A stretch of 64,000 nucleotides of DNA, taken from positions 186,001 to 250,000 of IMG/VR virus record IMGVR_UViG_3300050821_002957; one strand, given 5' to 3'. The notes beneath the pieces were generated by a model. The model saw only the letters and a list, made by a program, of their open reading frames with translations. It was not told where the DNA came from and made no database searches. The position numbers were made by a program, and so were the translations under genes. Of this stretch, positions 8,622 through 63,328 are shown one piece after another. Each line of letters opens with the position of its first letter. Positions within the stretch are counted from its first letter, which is position 1.

Positions 8622-8656
8622 TGGAGTATTTAGTTTTTGCGTGCCTAAATAGCAAC

Positions 8657-8908
8657 ATGAACGAAGCAATTGTATACCAAGTACGCTCAGTCGATGCTTT
8701 CGGCAAACAGAACGTGGTCCATTCCTATGAAACCGAAGAGGCTGCAAAGGTCGCTATCAAAATGATGCAGAAGCGAACACGAAAGCGGTATGTTGTTCAT
8801 CCTGTCAAGAATCGGCCTGCGGAACACTGGGGCATTAACTTTCCACCCAACCATCCGAAGCATCCAGACAATCTTAAAAACCCACCAAAGAGCCGCCGTT
8901 TAAGTTGA
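8657..8908 (+). CDS. Small basic late protein
   Basis: TAAATA 8646-8651, 5 nt, ATG. Confidence 0.7.
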   Translation: MNEAIVYQVRSVDAFGKQNVVHSYETEEAAKVAIKMMQKRTRKRYVVHPVKNRPAEHWGINFPPNHPKHPDNLKNPPKSRRLS

Positions 8909-8939: not shown

Positions 8940-9197
8940 ATGAATAACATTTTGCTGAACGATCCTGACACATTCATTCAATGGCGCAAAACCGATGAAC
9001 CCGGCGATAATCCAAAGTGGGAATCGCAGTGTGGTTATATCGAACAAACCAGCTTCGGGGATCGTCCAATATTCCAAGGATTTGTCGGCCCCAACCAAAC
9101 ACCCACTCAGACAAAGACCAGTCTAATTTCAATCAAACAAGAAGTCGAGCGGCTGTTTAAAAAGAATTATCAACTGACCTGGGCTTATCAAGATTAG
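8940..9197 (+). CDS. Hypothetical protein
   Basis: ORF downstream of TTGACA 8905. Confidence 0.6.
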   Translation: MNNILLNDPDTFIQWRKTDEPGDNPKWESQCGYIEQTSFGDRPIFQGFVGPNQTPTQTKTSLISIKQEVERLFKKNYQLTWAYQD

Positions 9198-12100
9198 GTC
9201 GGAATAAACATAGCGTTTTGATTGCGCTCATAAGATGTATCAGTGTTCTTTGCACGTAGGTCACCAGTATGAGTACTGTTATTGTTAGTGATCTTTGTGG
9301 TCTGTGGTGCAATGATCTGATGTCCGGTTCCTGATTGTCCTGACGTTCTGTTCAATTCAGAATTTACCGCTGAGACTTGTGCCAATTGAACACCAGTGCT
9401 TTCAGGAGACAATTTCGGTGTATCAAGTCTAGGAGCAGCAGTATTTGTAGCTGTGGCAACCATTGCAGGCATTGACGTTGCTGTTGGTCGATCTACAGGC
9501 TTTGGACTACGTGATAAAGCTGTCACCACATTCTTTTGATTAGCTACGTTCTTGATTGTATCGCCGTAACCTCTAGCCGTGGCATACTTCGCTCCCATGT
9601 TCTCAATGAACTTGTTTACATCTCCAGTCTTTTGATATTCGGCAAAGGCAGCGGCATACGGACCCTTTGGATTAGATAGGAGTTTTGCGTGAGCTATGAA
9701 ACCTTCTTCCATAGTCTTGTAATCGGCAAACTCTCTCTTGACTGAAAATCTTTTTTTGCCTGACCAACCCATCTTCAAAGGAGAGCCATCCAACTCTGTT
9801 GCTGTAGCTGCTTCTTTCGGTTTTGATTTTTGAAATTGAGCGAATTCAGCGGGAGTCATGTCTTCCTGGGTCGTTCTAGTCTGACTCATCGTATCGCTTT
9901 TTGATTTGGTGACTCCAAATGCATTGTTACCAATCGAATGCTTACCCCAACCAGATTCTACGGCCCATTGTGCAATTGTTACTTGAGCCGGAACACCAGT
10001 TGCTTTTTCTGCATCCATTGCCATCTGTGCGATTTCTGGTGGAACTTCGCCCTGCTTGTACTTGATGTTTTTGTTCTGTGTTCCGCCACCTGTTCCAAGA
10101 ATACCGATACCTGAACCACCAGCCGCCGTGACACCAGAAGATTGTGGCTGTGGCGTTGCAGGTGTCGGTGAGGTTGGTGAAGATGTCGGCGCAACTGTTT
10201 TCGTCTGTGTTGGCGATGTTGTCGGAGTGTGAAAGCTACGAGCAGTCTTTGCCAATTCAGGTGTAGATGAAATTGGAGTAGCAGGAGGCGGATTCAATCC
10301 TCTACGTGGCGTTACAGTATTTTGTGTCTGTTGGGTCGGAGCAGGCGCAGCACTAGGAGCCGGTGCTGAAGTAGTTGGTGCAGGCTTGGCTGTTTCTGCT
10401 GTCTTCTTACCGCCGCCAAATGGATGTAGAATTGAATTGATCTTATCAGAAATCCAATCAATGACAGATTTGATAGCATCGGTTACTGACTGCAAGGCAT
10501 CTGTCAAAATTTTGGTGTTTTGTGGGCCAATAATGTTTTCGACCATCTTCTTGATCGAATCGAAAACACTGGAGAAGGCCGTACTGATACTTGCAAACGC
10601 TTTGGTGATGGTCTCCATACCAGGGATCTTCATGATCTCTTGACCAAAGTTTTCAAATGATTTTGTGAATGCCTCGATTACCTTATCCAATGCATCTTTG
10701 ATGGTATCGAGATTGAACATCGTCAAGAACCATTTGCCAAGCGCACTGAACATTCCCAGTACACCATCTTTCAGTTCTTCTATTCCTTTGTCGAATGTCT
10801 TAGGATCAGACAAATCGGACAGACCATCGATGAACTTTGACAGTCCTTCAAAAAAGTCGCCGATGATCTCAATCATCTTGCCAAGACGTTTTGCGACAAA
10901 CTCCAGGATCGGTCCCAGAACTTTGAAGATTGGTTTGGATGCCACATAGAGAGCACTCAAAATGGAACCAATTGCTTTGAAAATGCTGGCAAACGATTTT
11001 GCGCTGGTCTTTCCAAGTGTCTTTCCAATTTCTGTTTTGACACCTGCCAATCCGAGCACGAAATCAATAATTCCGAACAGACCTTCGACCACGCCGCCTA
11101 AACCACCAGCGACCCGATCCATCATCGTCAATTTCTTTTTGTCTCCAAGATACTTTTCTGCGTGCATGAATGCCGGGATGAAATCGAAGATAGCAGTGAT
11201 TGCCATAATGACTTCGCCGACAACTGGAATGAAATCTAGGAATTCAGCCATTCGACCTGCGCCACCCAAGAGTTTTGCGCCCTTGAGCATCTCGCCGCCT
11301 TCGGCCAGGAGCTTAGTACCACCCTTTGCACCTGCTTCAGCACCTTCCCCGACTGCCTTTCCAACCTCTCCCAGACCCTTTGCGCCGTCCTCTACGGCTT
11401 CGATGCCGCTTGCCGCACCCTCAACACCCCTTCCAGCCCCAGAAGCGCCCTTGCCTCGTCCAAACCAGCGCTTGAACATGCCTCCTTCTTCAGCTTCAGC
11501 CCCACCTTTAGCAGTTTTGTTGCCGAGACCCAGCCACTTTCCAATTTTGCCGCCAAACAACCGTCCGATTCCGGCTTCAATGCCAGACATGAGACCGCCG
11601 AGCAAACCGCCCTTTTTCCCACCTGATTTTTTGGCGACATCAGCAAGCAATCCACCAGCATCGCCATCGGTTGTTTCCCGACGCTTTGCGTTCGCATCCA
11701 ATTCGGATTGATCTAGTTGCTTTGCAAGCAATTTGTTGATTTCTTTTAGTTCAATCAACTGCTCTTCGTCTAATTTTGCGACTCTCGAAAGCGGACCTTC
11801 TTTGTCGCTGGTAAGAATGCTCAATTTTTTGTCTTGATCTTTTTGGACACCTTCCATGAGCTTGAGCAAACCTGCGGTATTACTTTGGCTCGCCAGTTTT
11901 TCAGGATGTAATGTCGGTTCATCCAAATCCATACGCCCGTTTTGAACAAGCTCTGGAGCCGCCGCCTTTTTCAATTGTGGTGGTGCTTCAAATTTTTCTA
12001 CGTTTGGCATCGCATGAACAGCAGCAGTCATCATTGCTTTGACTGGACTGTTGTACGGATTTTTCATGCGCTCCGCTTCTTGCTTTTCCATATGGGCTAA

Positions 12101-13486
12101 AGCAGTCGGTTTCGGATGAGATTCTTCACCAAAAATTTCCGGCCAATCTGGTGTGCCTGAAGGCTTTTTTAAACTATCTTCATGCTTCTTTTGTAATAGA
12201 CCTTTACCATGCTTTCTGATGGACTCTAACCATGCATCACGTTCATCTAACTCTTGCTGCTTCTTTGGTGTGCTCTTCTGATAACCTGCCCAATCAGGAA
12301 TTGCATTACCCAAGTGATCCCGAACCAATTGCTGAGGAGCCGAGGACACAGATGGTCCGTGAGCTACTGCGGTCGGAGACGTTGATCCTATTGTTTGAAG
12401 TGGTGACTGAGATACTGGTGTTGACTGTCCTTGAGAACCAGCGGCACGTTCCCATAAAGGTTGATAATCAGGGCGCAACAATTCAGCACGCAAATTCTGA
12501 TGCTGTTCTGTGCTGATCTTACCCTTAGCGTGCAAATTTTCAAGAGCGGAGTGGCGAACATCTTCGTCTTTGATTTTTCCAAGATGTTCCTTTACGGTAT
12601 CATGATCATGTTTGACATCAGCATCGTCAAGCATCGGTTCATCCGGGCGTGGTAATACTTTTTTGATGTCACCGACTTTGAATTGATTAGCTTTTGTTTT
12701 CTGACGTGCTTCTCGACGATCACGCATTTTTTCGAGAATATACTTGGTAGCTAAACCGACAATCGGAGAGTGACCAGCCAAACCAGAGATGACACTGACT
12801 GCATCAATATTTTGCTTCTGTAAGAACGAACCCATTTTACCGAGCAAACCTGTACGCTGACGTGTCTCTTGCTCCAATGCCTTTTGTAGATTAAGAGTGG
12901 CATTAGTGAGAATCTTATTTTCGGTGCCGACAGTGCTGAATCGAACACTCTCTTGAATATCAGAGAGCTTTTTCTTTGCTCCTTCCAGTTCGTCCTTGCT
13001 GTACGTATGGTACTCGGACGCCATGCTATCAATATTTTCAGCGTGGCGTTTTCCTGCATCGGAATACACATTACCACGTCGTTGCTTAATCAGCTTTTCT
13101 TTGTCTTTCTTTTTTTGAAGCGCAGTAAGTTGATCGACGACTTTTTTGGTAGATGCTTCGACCTGACGAATCTTCTCGAAATCGTCATCATTGTTGTTGC
13201 CACCAGTAGACTTTCTTGGAGACCTTGGACGACTGCCACCGCCACCTGAAGACGAGTTACGAGGAGCAGATCCACCGCCGCCACCTGAAGACACGTTGCC
13301 ATCCTTTAACATGTCTGCTAGGTCTTCGGCTGCGTTTTCAGTGGCCTGTTGAAATACCTGATGGATTTTGGTCGTCAGCTTCTTGGACAGATCATCTAAG
13401 AGATCTTCTTTGTCCACAAGCGTCAGATTTGAAACATCAATCTGATTCAGGTCTACCCCGTTTTTTGTTGTCTTCTTGGATGGCAT
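9194..13486 (-). CDS. Baseplate hub / tail length determinant (gp29-like) with C-terminal GH73 (FlgJ-like) peptidoglycan hydrolase
   Basis: 1430 aa; Gly-rich and amphipathic repeats; AQWAVESGWG..NNAFG..YAT motifs; C-terminal APxT..NNNST; follows 26 and 51. Confidence 0.8.
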   Translation of the reverse strand: MPSKKTTKNGVDLNQIDVSNLTLVDKEDLLDDLSKKLTTKIHQVFQQATENAAEDLADMLKDGNVSSGGGGGSAPRNSSSGGGGSRPRSPRKSTGGNNNDDDFEKIRQVEASTKKVVDQLTALQKKKDKEKLIKQRRGNVYSDAGKRHAENIDSMASEYHTYSKDELEGAKKKLSDIQESVRFSTVGTENKILTNATLNLQKALEQETRQRTGLLGKMGSFLQKQNIDAVSVISGLAGHSPIVGLATKYILEKMRDRREARQKTKANQFKVGDIKKVLPRPDEPMLDDADVKHDHDTVKEHLGKIKDEDVRHSALENLHAKGKISTEQHQNLRAELLRPDYQPLWERAAGSQGQSTPVSQSPLQTIGSTSPTAVAHGPSVSSAPQQLVRDHLGNAIPDWAGYQKSTPKKQQELDERDAWLESIRKHGKGLLQKKHEDSLKKPSGTPDWPEIFGEESHPKPTALAHMEKQEAERMKNPYNSPVKAMMTAAVHAMPNVEKFEAPPQLKKAAAPELVQNGRMDLDEPTLHPEKLASQSNTAGLLKLMEGVQKDQDKKLSILTSDKEGPLSRVAKLDEEQLIELKEINKLLAKQLDQSELDANAKRRETTDGDAGGLLADVAKKSGGKKGGLLGGLMSGIEAGIGRLFGGKIGKWLGLGNKTAKGGAEAEEGGMFKRWFGRGKGASGAGRGVEGAASGIEAVEDGAKGLGEVGKAVGEGAEAGAKGGTKLLAEGGEMLKGAKLLGGAGRMAEFLDFIPVVGEVIMAITAIFDFIPAFMHAEKYLGDKKKLTMMDRVAGGLGGVVEGLFGIIDFVLGLAGVKTEIGKTLGKTSAKSFASIFKAIGSILSALYVASKPIFKVLGPILEFVAKRLGKMIEIIGDFFEGLSKFIDGLSDLSDPKTFDKGIEELKDGVLGMFSALGKWFLTMFNLDTIKDALDKVIEAFTKSFENFGQEIMKIPGMETITKAFASISTAFSSVFDSIKKMVENIIGPQNTKILTDALQSVTDAIKSVIDWISDKINSILHPFGGGKKTAETAKPAPTTSAPAPSAAPAPTQQTQNTVTPRRGLNPPPATPISSTPELAKTARSFHTPTTSPTQTKTVAPTSSPTSPTPATPQPQSSGVTAAGGSGIGILGTGGGTQNKNIKYKQGEVPPEIAQMAMDAEKATGVPAQVTIAQWAVESGWGKHSIGNNAFGVTKSKSDTMSQTRTTQEDMTPAEFAQFQKSKPKEAATATELDGSPLKMGWSGKKRFSVKREFADYKTMEEGFIAHAKLLSNPKGPYAAAFAEYQKTGDVNKFIENMGAKYATARGYGDTIKNVANQKNVVTALSRSPKPVDRPTATSMPAMVATATNTAAPRLDTPKLSPESTGVQLAQVSAVNSELNRTSGQSGTGHQIIAPQTTKITNNNSTHTGDLRAKNTDTSYERNQNAMFIPT

Positions 13487-18935: not shown

Positions 18936-19540
18936 TCAATAACAGATGATGACGAATGGGATGTCTTCAAGCTCACTCAGGCGCACATCTTGTTCTTCTC
19001 GACAGCAAATGTCATCGAAGAGTTTATCGTCTTTGATCTGGCCGCAGTCAAACGCTAGGAACGTTTCATCTTCGGTCTGGCCGGTCAAGCGTGTCCATTC
19101 ACTCAGCGTGGCCTTGTAGACTGCCTCGTATGCATCCTTGCCTTCTCTAGTGCATCGGATGAATATGGCCTTGTCACACCCATGTGCCGTTACCGGCTTC
19201 TTTCTTTTATTCTTTGTCTTCGTCGCACCACTCATCGATTTTCCCATTTTGTTGTGATGTCCTTGATTACTGTGTCTGGCTCCGTAGTATAAAGCCAAAA
19301 AAGTTGAACTGCGTTATTGCCCCGAACTTGCATTTTCAAACCACCGCTGACTGACGTGAACTTGATATGTGGTTGTGCTCCTGCTCGAACAGGAGTGATG
19401 ATCCCCAGACCAATTTTTGTAACATGTGGTGATTCTTTTGCAGCAAGCACAACAGGGATAGCAGTAGGAATGACAGTCGAGTGGTTACCGGAAAACTTTG
19501 GTCCACGCAACAATCCTTTGAGTCCCTTATGACTGCCCAT
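18936..19540 (-). CDS. Two coupled hypothetical ORFs (19232-19540, 18936-19235)
   Basis: Overlapping stop/start. Confidence 0.6.
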
Positions 19541-19620
19541 GTGGATTATTTTGACACAGTACTAGGCCGCAGTGCAAGTGTATTCTTTCTGGAAGCACTC
19601 TTTGCGCTACATAACCTTAC

Positions 19621-20112
19621 ATGATCTGTAAGAAATGCCAAAATCGTATCCCTACTCGCATTGTAATCGAAGGCCGTCGCCGAAACCTTCAGCGCCGCAA
19701 GTATTGTTTAAAGTGCTCGCCATTCGGAGTCCACAACACTGGCGACCCACAAAAAATTTCTCTTCGAGGTACAGATCGAAAATGCGAAGGATGTATCAAC
19801 ATGATAGAACGTCGAAGACGATATTGTTCATCATGCATAAGCCGGATGCGCCGTCACAAAAGAAAACAGGTTGGTGTAGATGTGTTGGGAGGAAAATGTA
19901 TGGATTGCGGCTATAATCGATGTCTGGCTGCTCTCTCATTTCATCACCGTGATCCTTCAAAAAAGGAATTTACGATCAGTGAATTTTCGAGAACTACGAT
20001 GTCTCGATTCATTGCCGAAGTAAAGAAGTGTGATTTGGTTTGTGCTACATGCCACATCGAGAGGCACTATTTGAAAGATGGAGCCGAGTGGGAGAATCGA
20101 ACTCCCGAATGA
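19621..20112 (+). CDS. HNH endonuclease, homing type, overlapping the 3' end of a tRNA gene
   Basis: GGKCMDCGY..ALSFHHRDP..KCDLVCATCH. Confidence 0.88.
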   Translation: MICKKCQNRIPTRIVIEGRRRNLQRRKYCLKCSPFGVHNTGDPQKISLRGTDRKCEGCINMIERRRRYCSSCISRMRRHKRKQVGVDVLGGKCMDCGYNRCLAALSFHHRDPSKKEFTISEFSRTTMSRFIAEVKKCDLVCATCHIERHYLKDGAEWENRTPE

Positions 20113-20153
20113 TCGCTTTGCAGGCGAATACCTTACCACTTGGTTAACTCGGC
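20079..20153 (-). tRNA. tRNA-Cys(GCA)
   Basis: Acceptor GCCGAGT/ACTCGGC, T loop TTCGATT, anticodon loop CT-GCA-AA, encoded CCA. Confidence 0.93.
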
Positions 20154-20159
20154 GTAGAA

Positions 20160-20393
20160 CTATCGACGAGGAGAACGAAAGGCGTGTTCCCTAATAGCTT
20201 TAATCTCTGATCGCAAAGACTTGATTTCTGTTTGAAGAGGTTCGATCTGCTTATTGATGACATCAGTGATGAGATTTTTTAATTCTCCCACAGCGTTATC
20301 GTCATCGGGAAGTTGTCCCTGGAAAACAGTATCTTCAGTTCTCTTCGAGAGAGCATAGAACAGATGAGCGAACAAATAATTTTGAGTGAACAT
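20160..20393 (-). CDS. Small coiled-coil protein between the tRNAs
   Basis: TATATA 6 nt before ATG 20393. Confidence 0.55.
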   Translation of the reverse strand: MFTQNYLFAHLFYALSKRTEDTVFQGQLPDDDNAVGELKNLITDVINKQIEPLQTEIKSLRSEIKAIREHAFRSPRR

Positions 20394-24233: not shown

Positions 24234-24709
24234 TTACAAATAAAATTTTCCTTGATATGACTCACTGCTTTAGTCAGAGACGTGAATTGTTTGATGCCAT
24301 AACGGTTACAGACAATATCGACATTTCCTTTACGCCAGAAGCCAGAAGGACATACTACATGCAGTTTGTCAGTACCAGCATATAGACCAAGTTCAAGAAG
24401 GCTGATCGGACTTTTCGTCGCCGGATCAAAGTACATAATGATTGCATCGGCAGCTTCAAGAGCATCCAATTCCCATTCGACTTGCTGACGAAATTGCCTA
24501 CTTGATGCCACGTTCCGCCAATCAGAATTCCATTGTTCACGTCGTGGATTGAGCAAGATCACATCGTACTTTTTAAACATTGACACGACATGCTTCTGCC
24601 ACGGCTTTGCTCTATTCTGTTCGATGGAGCCGCCCAGAAAAATACGAAATCCGTCTGAAGGGTAGCTGTTTGGTGCTTTGAATTCTTGGGCCACAACTGA
24701 AGATAACAC
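24230..24709 (-). CDS. Nucleoside 2-deoxyribosyltransferase-like protein
   Basis: IFLGGSIE..WQ..NPRR..QVEWEL..SPISLLELG..FWRKGNV. Confidence 0.85.
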   Translation of the reverse strand: MLSSVVAQEFKAPNSYPSDGFRIFLGGSIEQNRAKPWQKHVVSMFKKYDVILLNPRREQWNSDWRNVASSRQFRQQVEWELDALEAADAIIMYFDPATKSPISLLELGLYAGTDKLHVVCPSGFWRKGNVDIVCNRYGIKQFTSLTKAVSHIKENFICK

Positions 24710-24814
24710 GCATGTTGAGACCTGTCAAACTTGGAAATTTGACAACTCTTAAATTCGTGCGATGATGACTCCACAAGGACAGAAACATTGGAACCCTCAA
24801 CAGCAACAGCACCT

Positions 24815-25459
24815 ATGAACACACGAGAAGAGTATTTATTGGCAGCGGTCGAAAAGCTCAGGCCGATCTTCGTCAAGGCAAAATTAGAAATCCAACCGAT
24901 CAAAGTATCGTGTGGACTCCCATCAAAGAAAAAGGCGCTCGGCGAATGTTGGAGTAGTGAATGCACCTTCGACGGCACCCGGCATATTTTTGTCACACCA
25001 GAACATCCTGACGCTGTGAGTACGCTTGGAACATTGGCACACGAACTCGTTCATGCATGTCTGCCGGATGATGCTAAACATGGTCCAAAATTCAAAGACG
25101 CCATGAAGCTCATCGGTCTCGAAGGCAAAGCGATTCATGCAGGTCCAGGACCAGAACTGCAACTCATCATCGAAAAGATCGTCGAAGAATTGGGCGATTA
25201 TCCGAATCCGACATTGAAGCCCAAACCAAAGTCGAAAAAAGAACGTGCCGAAGGAAAGAAGACATTCAAACTTTTCTGCCCACGAAAGCGCAACGGTGAT
25301 AAATCTTGTCTGCTTACGGAAAAGACGAACGGCGGCGACTACAGTGTAACCGTAAGTCGTAAGATGCTTAAGATGGCATTTCCGATTTGTGTCTGCGGCG
25401 CTGAAATGGAAATGGAAACGGAAGATTATGAACTCTACAAGCTCGGAGAAGCCGCCTGA
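24815..25459 (+). CDS. SprT-like Zn metallopeptidase-domain protein
   Basis: LGECW..TLAHELVH..HGPKFK; C-terminal CxC; start uncertain. Confidence 0.75.
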   Translation: MNTREEYLLAAVEKLRPIFVKAKLEIQPIKVSCGLPSKKKALGECWSSECTFDGTRHIFVTPEHPDAVSTLGTLAHELVHACLPDDAKHGPKFKDAMKLIGLEGKAIHAGPGPELQLIIEKIVEELGDYPNPTLKPKPKSKKERAEGKKTFKLFCPRKRNGDKSCLLTEKTNGGDYSVTVSRKMLKMAFPICVCGAEMEMETEDYELYKLGEAA

Positions 25460-55240: not shown

Positions 55241-55359
55241 GATCGGCTGACCACATGAAGTGCGGCCACCAGCCATAGTGAGACTTTCGGACTATCAAAT
55301 AGCCTCCACGAGTCAACCAACGGCCTATGGAAAATATAAGGCAATTCGACATTAGTGAT

Positions 55360-56247
55360 TCAATAGCGGTTATGATGATCGTATCTGTTTCTGGTGGCTT
55401 TTTGATACGCCTTAGCTACATCCGTACTAAATCCATGATCACGAGCAACAATGTGTTGAGAACCGTCTGGATGCTCAAAGACGCCTAAGTTTTTCTTCTG
55501 GTGATAGTCGTTCGGTGAGTGCCCAGTATTGCCGTGATAGTCCTGAAATTTCTGAACAAGTGGATGCTGATTCAGACGATGATGTTCTGCTTCTTGCTCA
55601 GACGTTCCTGAGTAATGTCTACCGTTGTTCTGGTCGTGGTTGTGGACCAAGGTATTGACAAACTGTTTGTGATTGATACCTTTTGGAAACTCTTTGTTCT
55701 TGGTCAGCTTTTGAAACTCTCCAGGCTTGATGTCTCGCACATGGCCGACGTGAGACCATTCATGTTTTTCGTGGTCATGATCAATCAATGGAGGAAAGAT
55801 GCCGCTTTCTTTGTTTGAACTGTAATGATTTGATCCTTTCTCCGGTTCGTAGCGAAGAATACGATAGTTTCCGTTCACCCAATGATCGCCACCTTCTGCG
55901 TGGTTTTGCATGGCACCCAGGCTCATTCCGTCGTGTTCTGAGGCTTTGTGATGCTTGTCGAGTGCGGCTCTGATGGCAACTTTTGTTCCAGAATGGATGT
56001 GTGCATCTTTGCCGTCAAGAACAATGTGATGCGGTGTGTCATGTTTCAAATAGGCTCTGGACGAACCTTTGGGCATGTTACCTTCGATGCCAGTCTTCTG
56101 TCCGCTGTTGGTCAATTGTTTGATCTTTTTTGCGAGCAGGCTTTGCTTTGGCGCATACGAATTTGAAGACGTAACAATCGACCGGAGTTCAGGATGAAGC
56201 TCTTCGACGATTACATTGTGGATGAAGTCTTTAAAATTGACCAGCAT
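55360..56247 (-). CDS. His-rich atypical protein kinase-like protein, putative internal head protein
   Basis: GSSRAY, KVA, QNHAE, DYHQKKNLG, IVARDHGF in kinase order; late leaderless; NFKDFI..VEE N-terminus. Confidence 0.65.
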   Translation of the reverse strand: MLVNFKDFIHNVIVEELHPELRSIVTSSNSYAPKQSLLAKKIKQLTNSGQKTGIEGNMPKGSSRAYLKHDTPHHIVLDGKDAHIHSGTKVAIRAALDKHHKASEHDGMSLGAMQNHAEGGDHWVNGNYRILRYEPEKGSNHYSSNKESGIFPPLIDHDHEKHEWSHVGHVRDIKPGEFQKLTKNKEFPKGINHKQFVNTLVHNHDQNNGRHYSGTSEQEAEHHRLNQHPLVQKFQDYHGNTGHSPNDYHQKKNLGVFEHPDGSQHIVARDHGFSTDVAKAYQKATRNRYDHHNRY

Positions 56248-56256
56248 GTCCAGTAT

Positions 56257-56511
56257 TTAGTCGAACAAACTGGCCTGATGAATCTTGGACAAATGCTTTT
56301 CTAAATTGGTGGGAGTCTTGCCGCCTTTCTTCTTCGCTGAGTGTGTCCATCCTGCGTCAGAGACGGTCGCTGTGTGGTCGAGACGAGGATGGGTATACTT
56401 GGTGACCCCGGACTCATTCGACGCCTTCTGATAGCCGTAATTGCGGAGCACAGCCTGGACTTTCTTGCTCGATTTGGACTCGGCGATCAGAAATTCGCTG
56501 AAGGATTGCAT
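56257..56511 (-). CDS. Putative internal head protein (MQSFSEFLIAE)
   Basis: Late promoter 5 nt before ATG; capsid-targeting-like N-terminus. Confidence 0.65.
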   Translation of the reverse strand: MQSFSEFLIAESKSSKKVQAVLRNYGYQKASNESGVTKYTHPRLDHTATVSDAGWTHSAKKKGGKTPTNLEKHLSKIHQASLFD

Positions 56512-56539
56512 GACTGTATTTAGCTGTATAGATATCCAT

Positions 56540-58265: not shown

Positions 58266-58733
58266 TCATTGCTGTAATTTTTTGTATGCATCTCGTGCAG
58301 GCATGATACCTTCCCGACCGAGTTCTTTCATGGCTCGTGCGTTCTTATAAGATTTACCACCGTTCTTTGGGCGCTTGTAGACACCTGCGCTACCTGAGAC
58401 AGTCACTTCATCATTGTGGTCTGGTTTCATGAAATGTAGAGCTTTGAGTGCTGTCGCTTTGCCCTTTGGATGAGTAGCATCATAATGGACAAAGTGATGA
58501 AAACCGTGAATGCTGCTTACGTTCGCTCCGAATCTTGTGAAACCCTTTGCTTGAGCATCTTGAACAGAATCACCCTGTTTGCCGCCAGCTTTTATATAAT
58601 CGGGATGATGATTGGCATAGTGTTCTCCATGATGACTGAACAAATGTGCTTCACCAGACGGACTCATCCATCCTCTCATGGCTTTTTCTGGTTGCCACGA
58701 TTCGTTGATGAATTGGATAAAGGTCAGTAGCAT
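58266..58733 (-). CDS. His-rich putative internal head protein (MLLTFIQFINE)
   Basis: Capsid-targeting-like N-terminus; GWMSPSG..H motif. Confidence 0.6.
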   Translation of the reverse strand: MLLTFIQFINESWQPEKAMRGWMSPSGEAHLFSHHGEHYANHHPDYIKAGGKQGDSVQDAQAKGFTRFGANVSSIHGFHHFVHYDATHPKGKATALKALHFMKPDHNDEVTVSGSAGVYKRPKNGGKSYKNARAMKELGREGIMPARDAYKKLQQ

Positions 58734-59311
58734 TACTCTTCCGGTTTATAGTCTTCCTTCGGATGCGTTGCGTGGAAGACCGGCGCTTTCTTTGTTCCCA
58801 TGCCTTTCACACGCTCGACATGATGAAAACGCTTTGCCAATTCGTGATGAACATGATCGGCATCGATGTCATGAGCTTTGCGTGGAGACTCGGGGAAGTT
58901 GCCGGTGAATGCGCCACCTTTGTGAGTCGCCTTGTGAATTTGATCCAGCGTGTGACCCATCATCTTTTTGTTCGACTGGACGTTCAGAACATTAGATGCG
59001 TACACATGATGATACTTCTTGTCTAGTGCATGAGGATCGTGAACGCCGGGTTTCTGGTTGCTTCCAAATTCGTGTGCTGTGACGTTGTGACCTTTTTCAC
59101 GAAGGCGCTTTGCGTGCGCTGCTTCGTGGCCTGCACCGAAATCGAGAAGATGGCGACCTGCCTTGTCGTTGTGTTTAGCTTCGACAGCTTCGACGTGACG
59201 AGGCACCAGGGCCTTTGCGCCGACTGCACCAGCCGCACGAGAAGTGCTGTTGGCGATTTTCTTTTCTTCGTCGCTAAATTCGAGCAGCCAGTTGGTAAAG
59301 GACTTCATCAT
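58733..59311 (-). CDS. His-rich class I SAM-dependent methyltransferase-like protein, putative internal head protein
   Basis: LLDFGAG motif I, VTAHE motif II, YHHVYASNVLNV; late leaderless; KSFTNWLLE N-terminus. Confidence 0.7.
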   Translation of the reverse strand: MMKSFTNWLLEFSDEEKKIANSTSRAAGAVGAKALVPRHVEAVEAKHNDKAGRHLLDFGAGHEAAHAKRLREKGHNVTAHEFGSNQKPGVHDPHALDKKYHHVYASNVLNVQSNKKMMGHTLDQIHKATHKGGAFTGNFPESPRKAHDIDADHVHHELAKRFHHVERVKGMGTKKAPVFHATHPKEDYKPEE

Positions 59312-59627
59312 GCCAGTATTTAGCTGGCTTTGACTCCTACTTCCTTCAACTTACGAGGACGGCCTGCTTTGCGTCCCTTTACACGGTCGTACACACTGCG
59401 CTTGTGACTGTATCTGCGGCTACGAAAGATTTTATAGGCACGCTGAGTCAAAGTTTCGTCTTCTTTCATTTTAACACTCTCGATTGGAGTAGCGAAAATA
59501 TTGACCGGGCCGCAGCCTGTAAATTCGTATCCACAGTGTTCGCAGCCGAGACACGGTTCATTCACACAAACACCCGGCGAAAGTTTCTTTGGTTTATCGT
59601 TTGAAAGTTGAAATGCCATGACGGTAT

Positions 59628-60167
59628 CTATGTCACATGTAAATGCATGTGCTGTTGCAAATCCTTTGGTGTCTGACCAGCGAAGCGAATCATACCCGAG
59701 ATGTAATGAGTCCAGCCATCTGGTGTGATTTCGATTTGATGATCGTACATTCCAGGCCGGTCGGAAACGAACATCAAACTTTGAGGACGGCGTTCGATTC
59801 TCCATCCAAATTTGCGAAGCACGGTCATGTACTGATCGGAGACAGGTTTCGGGGCAGGTTGTGCCGCTGCTCCTGGAGATGGCTGTGGAATGGGCGCTGG
59901 ATCGGGCTGTAACGTCGCCAGATCGATTCCATGCTTCTCGGCAAGGCGTTCGGCCTGCTGACGTGCATTGATGCCTTCCGCAGCCGTTCCAGGCCGGGAA
60001 GCCAACGCCATCAAATTTCTGATTGTGGCAACGTGATCTCGTTCTGGACCTGATTTGATCTCTTCGTAATAGAGATGAATCACATTGTCGCCGATGCCTA
60101 CACCATGAATGCCATTTTCACCCAGGAACTCATCTCGAATTTTTGCTTTGGTTTCAAGAAGTGTCAT
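59628..60167 (-). CDS. DUF2786-like domain protein with C-terminal module shared with 56257-56511
   Basis: IRNLMALASRPGT..AERLAEKHGI; VLRKFGW..DH..GWTH..G.TP..L..H. Confidence 0.6.
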   Translation of the reverse strand: MTLLETKAKIRDEFLGENGIHGVGIGDNVIHLYYEEIKSGPERDHVATIRNLMALASRPGTAAEGINARQQAERLAEKHGIDLATLQPDPAPIPQPSPGAAAQPAPKPVSDQYMTVLRKFGWRIERRPQSLMFVSDRPGMYDHQIEITPDGWTHYISGMIRFAGQTPKDLQQHMHLHVT

Positions 60168-60177
60168 GTGGTGAAGA

Positions 60178-60390
60178 CTAGTGTTCAGGTTCCTCCGAAA
60201 ACACAAAGTCAGCTAGTTTGTCGGCGGTCAACAGTACATCAGAGATCCTGACTGTTGAGCCATTGGAATTCGCAGCAGTTGATTCAAGCTCCGCTGCGAG
60301 TTGCAGAATTTCAAGTTTCAAAAAGCGTGCGTCCGGTTTCTGATCGACTGCTTGGACGGTGATGTTAGTAAGGTTCTTCTCGTCACTCAT
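60178..60390 (-). CDS. Helical-hairpin protein, clip-less paralog of 60383-60712
   Basis: LKLEILQLA..VRISDVLLTADKLADFV. Confidence 0.65.
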   Translation of the reverse strand: MSDEKNLTNITVQAVDQKPDARFLKLEILQLAAELESTAANSNGSTVRISDVLLTADKLADFVFSEEPEH

Positions 60391-61297: not shown

Positions 61298-61939
61298 TCA
61301 GTTGGCTGATACGCCGTTGGTTTCTTCTTCGCCATCTTCGTCTTCTTCCGGCTCGTCGGCGAGCGTTTGCATGAAGGCTTCTTTGGCGGCGGCATCCATT
61401 CCAATCAATTGTAAAAGAGGCGTAGCAGAGACTAACGTGACGCCGTAGTAAGTGCTGTCGGGATTACGAGGTGGACGATCAGGAAGTTGTGAACCATAGC
61501 GGCCTTTCCCAGGTGCTTCTTGAAAGCCACGATAGAACTCGAATGTCTCATCATCGAGATTCACGATGTAGGCGTACTCACAGAACAAACTATCGAGTAG
61601 GAAGCCGTGAGAATCGATCATGACACCAAGCTCTTCGTCGAGCCACGGAGCGAGACTGCCCTGAGCTTCACGCAACAGGCAATACCAATCCTCAAGTTTC
61701 TGTTTGCTCACTTCGAGGTTGGCCCACTTCTCGTTTGCGGCGATTTGTTCTGCGGTCGGCGGTTCATCGCTGTCGATCAAGACGATGGCTCGTGCGACCT
61801 TTTTCATCTGTTCGATTGACGATCCGATAATGTCGTCAATCAAGTCTGATCCAAGCCCGTCTGGATAGGAGTCGAAATGGTTGTATGTAACCTTGTCGAG
61901 TCCGTCAATTCTGAATCCGAATGCGCCTCGTGTTCCCAT
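61298..61939 (-). CDS. Conserved phage protein (YxHxD(G/S)YPxGxG family)
   Basis: MGTRG..YNHFDSYPDGLG..EYAY; related to 62526-63293. Confidence 0.7.
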   Translation of the reverse strand: MGTRGAFGFRIDGLDKVTYNHFDSYPDGLGSDLIDDIIGSSIEQMKKVARAIVLIDSDEPPTAEQIAANEKWANLEVSKQKLEDWYCLLREAQGSLAPWLDEELGVMIDSHGFLLDSLFCEYAYIVNLDDETFEFYRGFQEAPGKGRYGSQLPDRPPRNPDSTYYGVTLVSATPLLQLIGMDAAAKEAFMQTLADEPEEDEDGEEETNGVSAN

Positions 61940-62438
61940 TGTTGGGTCCTTTCGTACTGAATGCTTCTTTCAAAAATGCTGTTTGAATCTTGAACGCAAG
62001 TTGTCGTGGTTCTGTGAATATTGTAACACCCTGCGTCTCTTCGTTGCTGAATGTAAAGTCCACGGCGCTCTGCTGAATGTCCTCAGAAACGCCAAAAACG
62101 GCCAAGAAGCCGTCGATGGACACGATGCTATGGAAAGTGACCTCTTTGATCACGACGCCCGTCTCTTCATACGTCTCACGAATTCCGGCCTCTTGCCATG
62201 ACTCATGACGTTCGATGTAACCACCGGGCATACAAAACTCTCCCCGGCCCGGATCGATGTTGCGTTGAAGGCCAAGGATGCCGATGTCGCCGCCATTTTC
62301 ATCGACGATGGGCACAGCAATTATGATGATGGGGAATGGATTCAACCAGACATTCCTACCGCAGTTCTCACAATGAAAAGGATAGGCGTTCGATGCGTAC
62401 TTGGTTCCGCAGTAATGACAATGATCGTTTGCTTTCAC
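61905..62438 (-). CDS. Nudix hydrolase with N-terminal Zn ribbon
   Basis: CHYCG..CENCG; Nudix box GGYIERHESWQEAGIRETYEETG. Confidence 0.92.
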   Translation of the reverse strand: MKANDHCHYCGTKYASNAYPFHCENCGRNVWLNPFPIIIIAVPIVDENGGDIGILGLQRNIDPGRGEFCMPGGYIERHESWQEAGIRETYEETGVVIKEVTFHSIVSIDGFLAVFGVSEDIQQSAVDFTFSNEETQGVTIFTEPRQLAFKIQTAFLKEAFSTKGPNNGNTRRIRIQN

Positions 62439-62525: not shown

Positions 62526-63293
62526 CTAAACAGGCTCGACCGGATAATTCGGCAGACCGAGACCGGCGATATGCTTGCATGAGCCATGAACACGATGGGC
62601 CATGCAAGAACACTGCCAGCGATGATTGGTCTTGTGCTGACCGATGGTGTACTCGCTCGTGCTGTCCGTGAATGATTTGACCGTGAAGCGATTGGTGTAG
62701 AAGGCAGTGTCCTCCAAGCGAGTCGAGGTACGGGGTATCAGTACCTTCGGCAACACAGCGGGAAGCGGTTGGCGCTTCGGAGCACCAGGAATATGAACTT
62801 CCTCGCACGAGATGTCATTGCCGTCATCGTCGATGCTGACCTTGAAGCAAAAGACCATCGGCAGACCATTGACCATTTTGCCGGTGTCCACGACGTAGCG
62901 ATACTCGATGTCGCAGGGATCTTTCATCATGATGCCACATGAAATGAAATCGAGGCGTTCCTTTTTCGGAACAGAAGTGAACTCACGCTTTTCGTTCGGG
63001 TCCTTTGGATTGTGCGAATGCTCGTGCAGCTTGCCTGCGGCATCTTTGAATTTGTAATCGACGGCGAACATCTCACCGAGGAACACGACGTATCGGGCAG
63101 CGAGAAAAGCATCGTCATCCAGACGATTGTCCTTGAGCTTCTTGCAACGGCGAAGGAACTTGTACAGATCGACGCCAGCGCCCTTGGGATAGCCGTCGCT
63201 GTGACGATAAACGATGGCGCTAAGATAGGGCTTGTTCGTTACTGGATCGATGTATGTGCTGTCGATGAAGTGTGTCGTTGACCGTGTGCTCAT
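62526..63293 (-). CDS. YxHxDGYP-family protein fused to a SWIM zinc finger, leaderless
   Basis: MSTRS..YRHSDGYPKGAG; WQCSC..SCKHI. Confidence 0.7.
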   Translation of the reverse strand: MSTRSTTHFIDSTYIDPVTNKPYLSAIVYRHSDGYPKGAGVDLYKFLRRCKKLKDNRLDDDAFLAARYVVFLGEMFAVDYKFKDAAGKLHEHSHNPKDPNEKREFTSVPKKERLDFISCGIMMKDPCDIEYRYVVDTGKMVNGLPMVFCFKVSIDDDGNDISCEEVHIPGAPKRQPLPAVLPKVLIPRTSTRLEDTAFYTNRFTVKSFTDSTSEYTIGQHKTNHRWQCSCMAHRVHGSCKHIAGLGLPNYPVEPV

Positions 63294-63299
63294 GTATCT

Positions 63300-63328
63300 A
63301 AGATAGCAAAGATACATCTAAAAGTCAA
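63300..63328 (-). promoter_or_regulatory. Sigma70-type promoter with palindrome inside the spacer
   Basis: TTGACT-17-TATCTT; AAGATACATCTA at 63309-63320. Confidence 0.7.

Follow-up and report, generated by a model that had tools for sequence, protein, structure and literature searches.

Can a phage load a methyltransferase into its own head and deliver it to the host together with its DNA? This question is raised by a small gene in a stretch of 64,000 nucleotides (hereafter the window), which covers bases 186001-250000 of the 405,631-bp IMG/VR virus record IMGVR_UViG_3300050821_002957, a record rated complete by CheckV and read here with the standard genetic code. The gene encodes a putative methyltransferase (MTase) of 192 amino acids (aa), designated P0001, whose first residues resemble the capsid targeting sequence of bacteriophage T4 and whose start lies closely behind a late-promoter-like heptamer. 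The T4 sequence loads a few lineage-specific proteins into the head; to our knowledge, a single injected enzyme (Alt) and a single inhibitor whose target is known (IPI*) are all that have been characterised. A preliminary description of this DNA had proposed an MTase that is made late, enters the virion and acts at entry, an interpretation that is partly supported by the present analysis. On balance, we hold it probable, with modest confidence, that the product of the gene is a minimal, catalytically competent class I MTase dependent on S-adenosylmethionine (SAM), which is made late in infection and loaded into the phage head.

A capsid-targeting-like N-terminus

The MTase begins with (M)MKSFTNWLLE, while the T4 internal proteins IPII and IPIII start with MKTYQEFIAE and IPI with MKTFKEF (read from NC_000866). 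In T4, the N-terminal decapeptide of IPIII is sufficient for incorporation into the head; residues 4 and 7 are the targeting determinants, residues 8 and 10 serve processing, and the prohead protease gp21 cuts after L/I-x-E (PMC9026906). Counted from the second Met, the MTase carries F at position 4 and W at position 7 (Y and F in T4), followed by the cleavage motif L-L-E at positions 8-10. The segment (hereafter the tag) agrees with IPII and IPIII at all four functional positions (4, 7, 8 and 10), and the capsid-targeting-like start suspected in the preliminary description is borne out at this level. The tag pattern recurs in the same register in 42 of the 121 family members, with the consensus M-K-[TS]-F-K-Q-F-[LI]-x-E. 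Specifically, 37 of these 42 homologues have F and 2 have Y at position 4, 39 have F, W or Y at position 7, and 41 have E at position 10. Further members bear variants of the tag differing by one residue, or have it just inside an N-terminus that was probably mis-called.

Several lines of evidence concern the relation of the tag to the enzyme behind it. No extension is present in 24 of the 121 family members, which start with M-F-x-x-E-E..I-A-N at the position of F12 in P0001, so that their starts coincide with the predicted cleavage product of P0001. Three fusion proteins (P0031, P0040 and P0052) have the tag at their extreme N-terminus and about 140 unrelated residues between it and the MTase domain. 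The tag is also found on unrelated proteins. Within the window, these are the products of three neighbouring genes of 155, 84 and 295 aa, the last of which starts with a looser version, MLVNFKDFIHNVIVEE, with an IxE-type site at residues 13-15. At the loci of relatives, a GP88-family protein (MLSFRQFLAE) and a 976-aa HEAT-repeat protein (MKKFKNFLSE), both tagged, are encoded next to the MTase. Additionally, the other genes of the phage that share the promoter arrangement of the MTase gene (CTAAATA, five nucleotides, ATG; hereafter CTAAATA-N5-ATG) begin with different N-termini. Finally, tag-like N-termini occur 5 times among 1262 candidate open reading frames (ORFs) of the genome, against 0.55 expected. 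One more match to the tag pattern, in a DNA polymerase B fragment (G000 363489), was rejected as a chance hit and fits the approximately 0.5 false positives expected. On the grounds of the tag-less relatives, the fusions, the unrelated tagged proteins, the differing N5 genes and the genome-wide count, we argue that the N-terminal segment would be a detachable address rather than a part of the enzyme.

The same observations bear on the alternative that the MTase acts in the cytoplasm late in infection and stays unpackaged, its decapeptide having another use, for example in leaderless initiation or as an N-terminal helix, and resembling the T4 tag by convergence or as a vestige. A short helix is indeed modelled at residues 5-10, and the many tag-less relatives keep every catalytic motif. 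However, the decapeptide appears on unrelated proteins and is missing from the other genes with the same promoter arrangement, residues 1-7 have a predicted local distance difference test score (pLDDT) below 50 in the AlphaFold2 model, and the match with T4 falls on exactly the four mapped positions. We therefore consider an unpackaged enzyme unlikely.

Packaging by way of the tag would call for T4-type head machinery. The phage is uncultured and its DNA turns up in soil metagenomes, and by its gene content this giant soil phage is a relative of T4. A T4 baseplate gene lies in the window itself, as does a gp32 gene (PF08804, E-value = 2.5e-44), whose product is about 40% identical to those of the nearest deposited phages, T4-like cyanophages. 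Outside the window, the genome encodes a Gp23 major capsid protein (E-value = 3e-140), a portal of the Portal_T4 family (gp20), a large terminase, a tail tube protein, gp8 and a head-closure protein. Both partners expected for tagged cargo are present, namely a gp21-type prohead protease (PF03420, 130 bits, G000 24661-25110) and a gp22-type scaffold (T4_CASP, PF25623, E-value = 8e-67). An L-M-E|A site precedes the Pfam domain in the gp23 homologue. Compared with the T4 internal proteins IPI, IPII and IPIII, the MTase shares the aromatic residues at positions 4 and 7, the L/I-x-E at positions 8-10 and the character of a small basic protein, and its setting shares a cluster of tagged genes, a gp21-type protease, a gp22-type scaffold and predicted late promoters. 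It differs in that its mature part is a conserved enzyme fold, whereas IPI* is a small non-enzymatic inhibitor, and its family has no sequence relation to any of the T4 internal proteins.

The tag also stands in front of other probable enzymes. A 303-aa protein starting with MKTFAQFMTE is encoded outside the window (L020:6676-7587, plus strand, corresponding to G000 369676-370587), with a CTAAATA 15 nt upstream. Its residues 15-155 match Acb1 in Pfam, a family of nucleases directed against the cyclic-oligonucleotide-based anti-phage signalling system (CBASS) (E-value = 5e-22, 78.6 bits), and a second, C-terminal domain belongs to phrog_2859. It aligns to T4 57B from residue 10 on (29% identity, E-value = 5e-14) and, as the alignment only begins there, the decapeptide is an add-on in this protein too. 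This suggests an anti-CBASS enzyme that would be pre-loaded in the capsid. A third candidate for tagged enzymatic cargo is a 356-aa protein starting with MLKFQQWLAE (L005:294-1364, minus strand, corresponding to G000 19294-20364, likewise outside the window), a putative SprT-like zinc metallopeptidase (E-value = 3.5e-11) whose gene follows closely downstream of that for the major capsid protein. Concerning the relatives, the gene immediately upstream of the MTase gene encodes an Alt-like ADP-ribosyltransferase (PF03496, ADPrib_exo_Tox) in two separate T4-like contigs (L023:7188-7997 and L039:3781-4716); one of them has the tag-like start MKRFKEF and the other, when read from a TTG, KSFKEY.

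Enzyme class and family

The preliminary description had recognised a minimal class I MTase core from the motifs LLDFGAG, VTAHE and SNVLNV, which are located at residues 55-61, 77-81 and 106-111. In a 93-sequence alignment these motifs occupy invariant or nearly invariant columns (L56, D57, G59, G61, V77, T78, A79, S106, N107, V108 and N110). The alignment has 25 invariant columns, which also include N21-x-T23-x-R25 and N138-x-P140-x-x-P143-R144; invariant polar residues are N21, T23, R25, H66, N85, H91, Y100, N107, N110, Q112, N138 and R144. D57, G59 and G61 of motif I are invariant and E81, the acidic residue that would bind the SAM ribose, is E or D in the aligned relatives. Such conservation among sequences as little as 43% identical points to a functional gene under selection. 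The only Pfam match was a sub-threshold one to Methyltransf_23 (PF13489, E-value = 9.5e-5, 22.6 bits against a gathering threshold of 27 bits); many relatives carry a precomputed PF13489 match, which places the family at the edge of that model. Comparison of the family profile with the PDB sequences gave nothing significant (best E-value = 0.63).

An AlphaFold2 model built from the family alignment (pLDDT 86.1, predicted template modelling score 0.82) has the class I Rossmann fold, with strands beta1, beta2 and beta4-beta7. No strand is modelled between beta2 (76-80) and beta4 (100-105), where a conserved loop (G83, N85, H91) replaces beta3. Foldseek retrieved SAM-dependent methyltransferases with a probability of 1.0, and VIA-align gave Z-scores of 16.3 for CgnL, 15.8 for a TehB-like MTase, 15.4 for KedS8, 14.9 for TylM1 and 14.7 for PsmD, followed by further small-molecule, sugar, peptide and rRNA N-methyltransferases at Z 13-14. 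These matches span about 140-165 residues, and no DNA methylase is among the top rows. The N-methyltransferases of the Methyltransf_11/12/23 type (CgnL, TylM1, KedS8, TehB-like, PsmD, UbiG) share with the phage protein the Rossmann-type core, the GxGxG of motif I, the acidic residue after beta2 and a post-beta4 motif of the 'ss.vl..v' type (Z 14-16, root-mean-square deviation 2.5-3.2 A). They differ from it in sequence (10-19% identity), in the loop between beta2 and beta4 and in its own motifs ANxTSR and NxPxSPRK. Apart from the tag, the 192 aa hold a single Rossmann-type core with no extra domain, so the earlier statement that a target-recognition domain is lacking holds as well. Judged from the model, the protein has the fold of a minimal class I SAM-methyltransferase, and its nearest structural neighbours are N-methyltransferases of small molecules and peptides.

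One element of the preliminary description had to be dropped, namely a link between the NVLNV motif and MTases associated with phosphorothioation, because nothing of the kind was matched in PADLOC (E-value up to 0.1), NCBIfam or PHROGs. No such genes were seen at any of the loci that were examined for dnd-type neighbours. The segment ASNVLNVQ follows directly after beta4 and occupies the ordinary hydrophobic motif position of enzymes of the Methyltransf_11/23 type, so that it is no special signature.

These features also weigh on the possibility of a DNA MTase that protects the phage DNA, either by modifying the progeny before it is packaged or, in the manner proposed for P1 DarB, by acting in cis on the genome as it enters. 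The basic nature of the protein (isoelectric point (pI) 9.4) and its predicted late timing, suited to methylation before packaging, would fit such a role, for which DarB offers the precedent of a virion-borne methylase (PMC5512222). Nevertheless, neither a (D/N/S)PP(Y/F/W) nor a PC-type catalytic motif is present in the MTase, nor is there a target-recognition domain, the top structural neighbours act on small molecules, sugars and peptides, and no match of the restriction-modification type was found in PADLOC or NCBIfam. Moreover, protection of 405 kb would be slow for a 20-kDa enzyme that has no translocase and is present in a few tens of copies, and we regard DNA protection as distinctly improbable. 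An inert internal protein that reuses the MTase fold, whether to condense DNA as a filler or to bind SAM or a host factor, would have a parallel in T4 IPII and IPIII, which are without known enzymatic role (PMC9026906), and would suit the basic, His-rich cluster proteins, but it is very improbable given that motif I, the ribose-binding acidic residue and about 25 polar residues near the predicted active site are invariant or nearly so at 43-50% identity, a pattern usual for active enzymes.

Among 5.8 billion proteins, a word-based search picked out 207 relatives, nearly all of them unnamed and metagenomic and many on contigs of 140-175 kb. Look-alike clusters in the ESM Atlas are 88-100% virus. 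No match was found by megablast or tblastn (E-value up to 1e-3) among the 50,697 deposited phage genomes of INPHARED. Cellular homologues were also considered: 185,579 species genomes yielded only 8 matches, all on contigs of metagenome-assembled or single-amplified genomes and in a phage-like or giant-ORF context, and the family is accordingly treated as viral. Three architectures can be distinguished. The first comprises tagged single-domain MTases in T4-like contigs, and the second tag-less single-domain MTases, often preceded by a strong Shine-Dalgarno sequence and located in extended runs of small genes of early type that all point the same way. In the third, the MTase domain lies more than 1,200 residues into giant proteins (40-41% identity, E-value = 1e-34 to 1e-35). 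Two of these count as polyvalent by the Pfam domains they contain: a 2276-aa protein (L070:323-7150) combines it with LPD38 (E-value = 2.7e-31), and another of at least 2831 aa (L081:2-8494) with ART-PolyVal (E-value = 6.8e-32), sigma-70 r2/r4, MutS_I and DUF3990; a sigma-factor domain inside a polyvalent protein deserves attention in itself. The domain is thus a module of polyvalent proteins, while the window protein is single-domain and not polyvalent. As a separate observation, the MTase domain of some relatives (L028, L033 and P0078, among them a contig of a Prochlorococcus single-cell assembly) is preceded by a fused N-terminal domain of about 150 aa, which is conserved, contains the motif GDNVYVHRSAL and had no Pfam match.

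Polyvalent proteins have been proposed to be packaged and injected with the DNA (Iyer et al. 2017, PMC5512222). The MTase module described for them is a DarB-type adenine methylase, unlike the present family (PMC5512222). The comparison with P1 DarB is instructive, since both would be head-carried methyltransferases acting at entry and the present family also occurs as a polyvalent-protein module. In contrast, the DarB-type modules are EcoKI/TaqI-like N6-adenine DNA MTases with an NPP(Y/F) motif and a fused SF2 helicase and LPD36, whereas the present family lacks that motif and these partners, resembles small-molecule N-methyltransferases and is predicted to be loaded by a T4-type tag. ADP-ribosyltransferases are a recurring companion, as the upstream gene in the two T4-like contigs mentioned above and as a fused domain in L081.

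A maximum-likelihood tree was built from the MTase core with the tag columns excluded, by a quick search; it is unrooted and its deep support is weak. Of 126 rows, 52 were classed as tagged and all 52 fall in one subtree of 85 rows (support 89 in the Shimodaira-Hasegawa-like approximate likelihood-ratio test, SH-aLRT). Tagged rows and tag-less or giant rows are separated by 5 state changes, against about 30 in shuffles. The tree reveals that tagged rows cluster, but it does not order the events.

A putative late promoter and the gene neighbourhood

The preliminary description had also read the gene as late and leaderless, and a matching promoter arrangement recurs across the genome. The arrangement CTAAATA-N5-ATG occurs 23 times in the 405,631 bp, against 0.45 expected from Markov-simulated sequence, while none of the other spacings between CTAAATA and ATG exceeds 5 occurrences. 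Examples of the N5 arrangement in the window lie at 59312-59323 (the MTase gene), 56512-56523, 8645-8659 and 2649-2660; the end coordinate first given for the MTase gene, 59322, is one base short of the promoter-like heptamer. With longer leaders, CTAAATA precedes the genes of gp23, gp22, gp20, the large terminase, the tail tube, gp8 and the head-closure protein, and the genome encodes a protein homologous to gp55, the late sigma factor of T4 (E-value = 4e-19). The canonical T4 late promoter TATAAATA was tried as well and rejected, being not enriched (5 copies per strand against about 11 expected) and never found at N5. CTAAATA is, by these counts, the probable late motif of this phage genome. 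It is also the late promoter of phage Aeh1, where the motif starts at -12 (Nolan et al., PMC1524935). With that geometry, the N5 spacing puts +1 on the A of the ATG, which means a leaderless transcript. Strong sequence statistics, together with the published precedent of the motif, hence predict that the MTase transcript is late and leaderless. A literature search found no report of leaderless late mRNAs in a T4-related phage, and the fixed spacing suggests that they may be widespread in this one.

Relatives show similar arrangements. In the two closest ones (L120 and L121), CTAAATA or ATAAATA stands 6 nt in front of the MTase start, and CTAAATA arrangements of the leaderless type were noticed at the loci of L023 (at 4375) and L025 (at 7486). 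In the 141-kb relative L038, the MTase gene lies in a head cluster with the order scaffold, gp23, a 457-aa gene, the tagged GP88-family gene and the MTase gene.

Table 1. Features of the MTase locus (positions in the window)
Feature	Position	Strand	Description
MTase ORF	58733-59311	minus	ATG to TAA, 192 aa (P0001)
Tag-like propeptide, codons 1-11	59279-59311	minus	(M)MKSFTNWLLE; predicted gp21-type cleavage after L-L-E
Predicted mature MTase, residues 12-192	58736-59278	minus	motif I LLDFGAG, E81, ASNVLNVQ, ANxTSR, NxPxSPRK
MTase TAA stop	58733-58735	minus	overlaps the next gene's ATG by one base (TAATG)
CTAAATA late-promoter-like heptamer	59317-59323	minus	followed by 5 nt (59316-59312), then ATG
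Upstream ORF	59320-59805		stop codon overlapped by the CTAAATA heptamer
155-aa gene	58266-58733	minus	3' of the MTase gene; starts MLLTFIQFINE (tag-like); pI 9.6, 8.4% His
84-aa gene	56257-56511	minus	starts MQSFSEFLIAE (tag-like); pI 9.7; CTAAATA at 56523-56517, 5 nt before ATG
295-aa gene	55360-56247	minus	basic, 11.2% His; CTAAATA at 56260-56254, 6 nt before ATG

Judging from the overlap of its start with the MTase stop, the 155-aa gene is translationally coupled to the MTase gene. The 155-aa protein matched no family in Pfam, PHROGs, PADLOC or NCBIfam; likewise, the tagged neighbour genes and the MTase matched none in PHROGs, PADLOC or NCBIfam. The 84-aa gene shares the N5 arrangement and the 295-aa gene has an N6 spacing instead. 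The whole MTase protein (pI as given above) contains 11.5% His, and all four tag-bearing proteins of the cluster are basic (pI 9.0-9.7) and His-rich (6.0-11.5%). For ORFs of at least 100 aa, the genome mean of His is 2.7% and the 99th percentile 8.7%; the enrichment is not seen in distant MTase relatives. A homologue of the 155-aa gene follows the MTase gene only in L120, the closest relative (94% identical). It was considered as a conserved functional partner, but the neighbours differ in other relatives (a PAS-domain protein, a GNAT) and no partner is claimed. Upstream, genes at window positions 59628-60206, 61905-62438 and 62526-63317 (all minus strand) are syntenic with L120 (SWIM-like, NUDIX, DUF2786). 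With a syntenic block upstream and variable genes downstream, the MTase gene stands at the edge of a conserved block.

Two contigs from RNA libraries (Logan contigs) are identical to parts of this region, one of 233 nt, from an independent soil RNA library, to 58758-58990 within the MTase gene, and one of 332 nt to 55292-55623, part of the region of the 295-aa gene. Such contigs give neither starts nor strand nor expression level, and carry-over of DNA is possible. Elsewhere in the window (9194-13486, minus strand) a 1430-aa ORF with a C-terminal glucosaminidase/SLT-type muramidase domain (PF01832, E-value = 1.3e-18) was noticed near baseplate and tail tube-like genes, and it probably encodes a tail-associated lysin or hub protein.

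Proposed mechanism and significance

Taken together, these data fit the following course of events. A gp55-type late sigma factor would transcribe the MTase gene from its CTAAATA promoter, the mRNA beginning at the AUG. The first 10-11 residues, by homology with the T4 tag, would then bring the enzyme into the gp22-type scaffolding core of the prohead, where a gp21-type prohead protease would cut after L-L-E11, leaving a basic enzyme of 181 aa in the head with the DNA. In the next infection, this enzyme would be ejected with the DNA and methylate its target with host SAM before any phage gene is expressed, acting alongside the tagged Acb1-like and SprT-like cargo and, in relatives, with Alt-like ADP-ribosyltransferases. 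Delivery at entry is supported by evidence at the level of the family, that is the tagged unrelated neighbours, the tag-less relatives that start at the predicted cleavage product, the polyvalent modules and the Alt-like neighbours.

Several points weigh against loading into the head. The tag has been shown to function only with T4's own scaffold, and this phage is distant from T4. The double Met would shift the register of the tag by one if the 5'-terminal AUG is used, and a second L-x-E (L70-R-E72) lies inside the fold, where cleavage, if the site is accessible, would destroy the enzyme. The upstream stop codon is only 8 nt away and is overlapped by the heptamer, so that termination and reinitiation on a longer transcript rivals leaderless initiation. 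Many relatives are tag-less and apparently early and, as they keep their function, packaging is not required for the function of the enzyme. Finally, fold neighbours do not identify a substrate, and in the model the invariant TSR falls within the low-confidence residues 23-30.

Concerning the target, the N-methyltransferase neighbours in structure, the missing DNA-MTase motifs and the host-modifying or counter-defence nature of the companion cargo all point away from DNA, which is most likely not the target; a host protein or a small polar molecule, for example a nucleotide-type signal, would be the favoured substrate. Host takeover or counter-defence is accordingly the role that we favour. 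The tag-less early versions fit an enzyme that is needed at the start of infection and is supplied either by early expression or by pre-loading. T4 Alt, an ADP-ribosyltransferase that is packaged in the head and injected (PMC5512222), is a close parallel. Like Alt, the MTase is an enzyme predicted to be loaded into the head, processed by a protease and injected to modify host targets, and in relatives its gene directly follows a tag-like ADPrib_exo_Tox gene while the two domains are fused in polyvalent proteins. The difference lies in the chemistry, which is NAD-dependent ADP-ribosylation for Alt and, by prediction, SAM-dependent methylation for the MTase.

A literature search found no paper that links a capsid targeting sequence with a methyltransferase and no relative was found among the deposited phage genomes. 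On these grounds, the MTase probably represents a new class of enzymatic cargo for a known loading route, in a family that also appears in a second, independent delivery format. Going further, one may tentatively envisage a virus-only MTase family that is delivered at DNA entry by two unrelated routes, the T4-type tag and the polyvalent proteins, and that methylates a host immune signal or protein; we consider this broader picture possible, yet doubtful. If it is true, methylation would become a third injected chemistry beside the ADP-ribosylation by Alt and the stoichiometric inhibition by IPI*, and the MTase would be part of a pre-loaded counter-defence kit with the tagged Acb1-type anti-CBASS nuclease and the SprT-like peptidase.

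Loading of the MTase into the head would also have practical consequences. The tag rule predicts cargo from the sequence alone, the N-terminus of the mature enzyme is predicted at F12, and the tag-less relatives are natural controls. If the MTase is indeed head-loaded, T4-like phages would pre-load enzymatic counter-defences that act before transcription, and the current view of the timing of defence and counter-defence in early infection would change.

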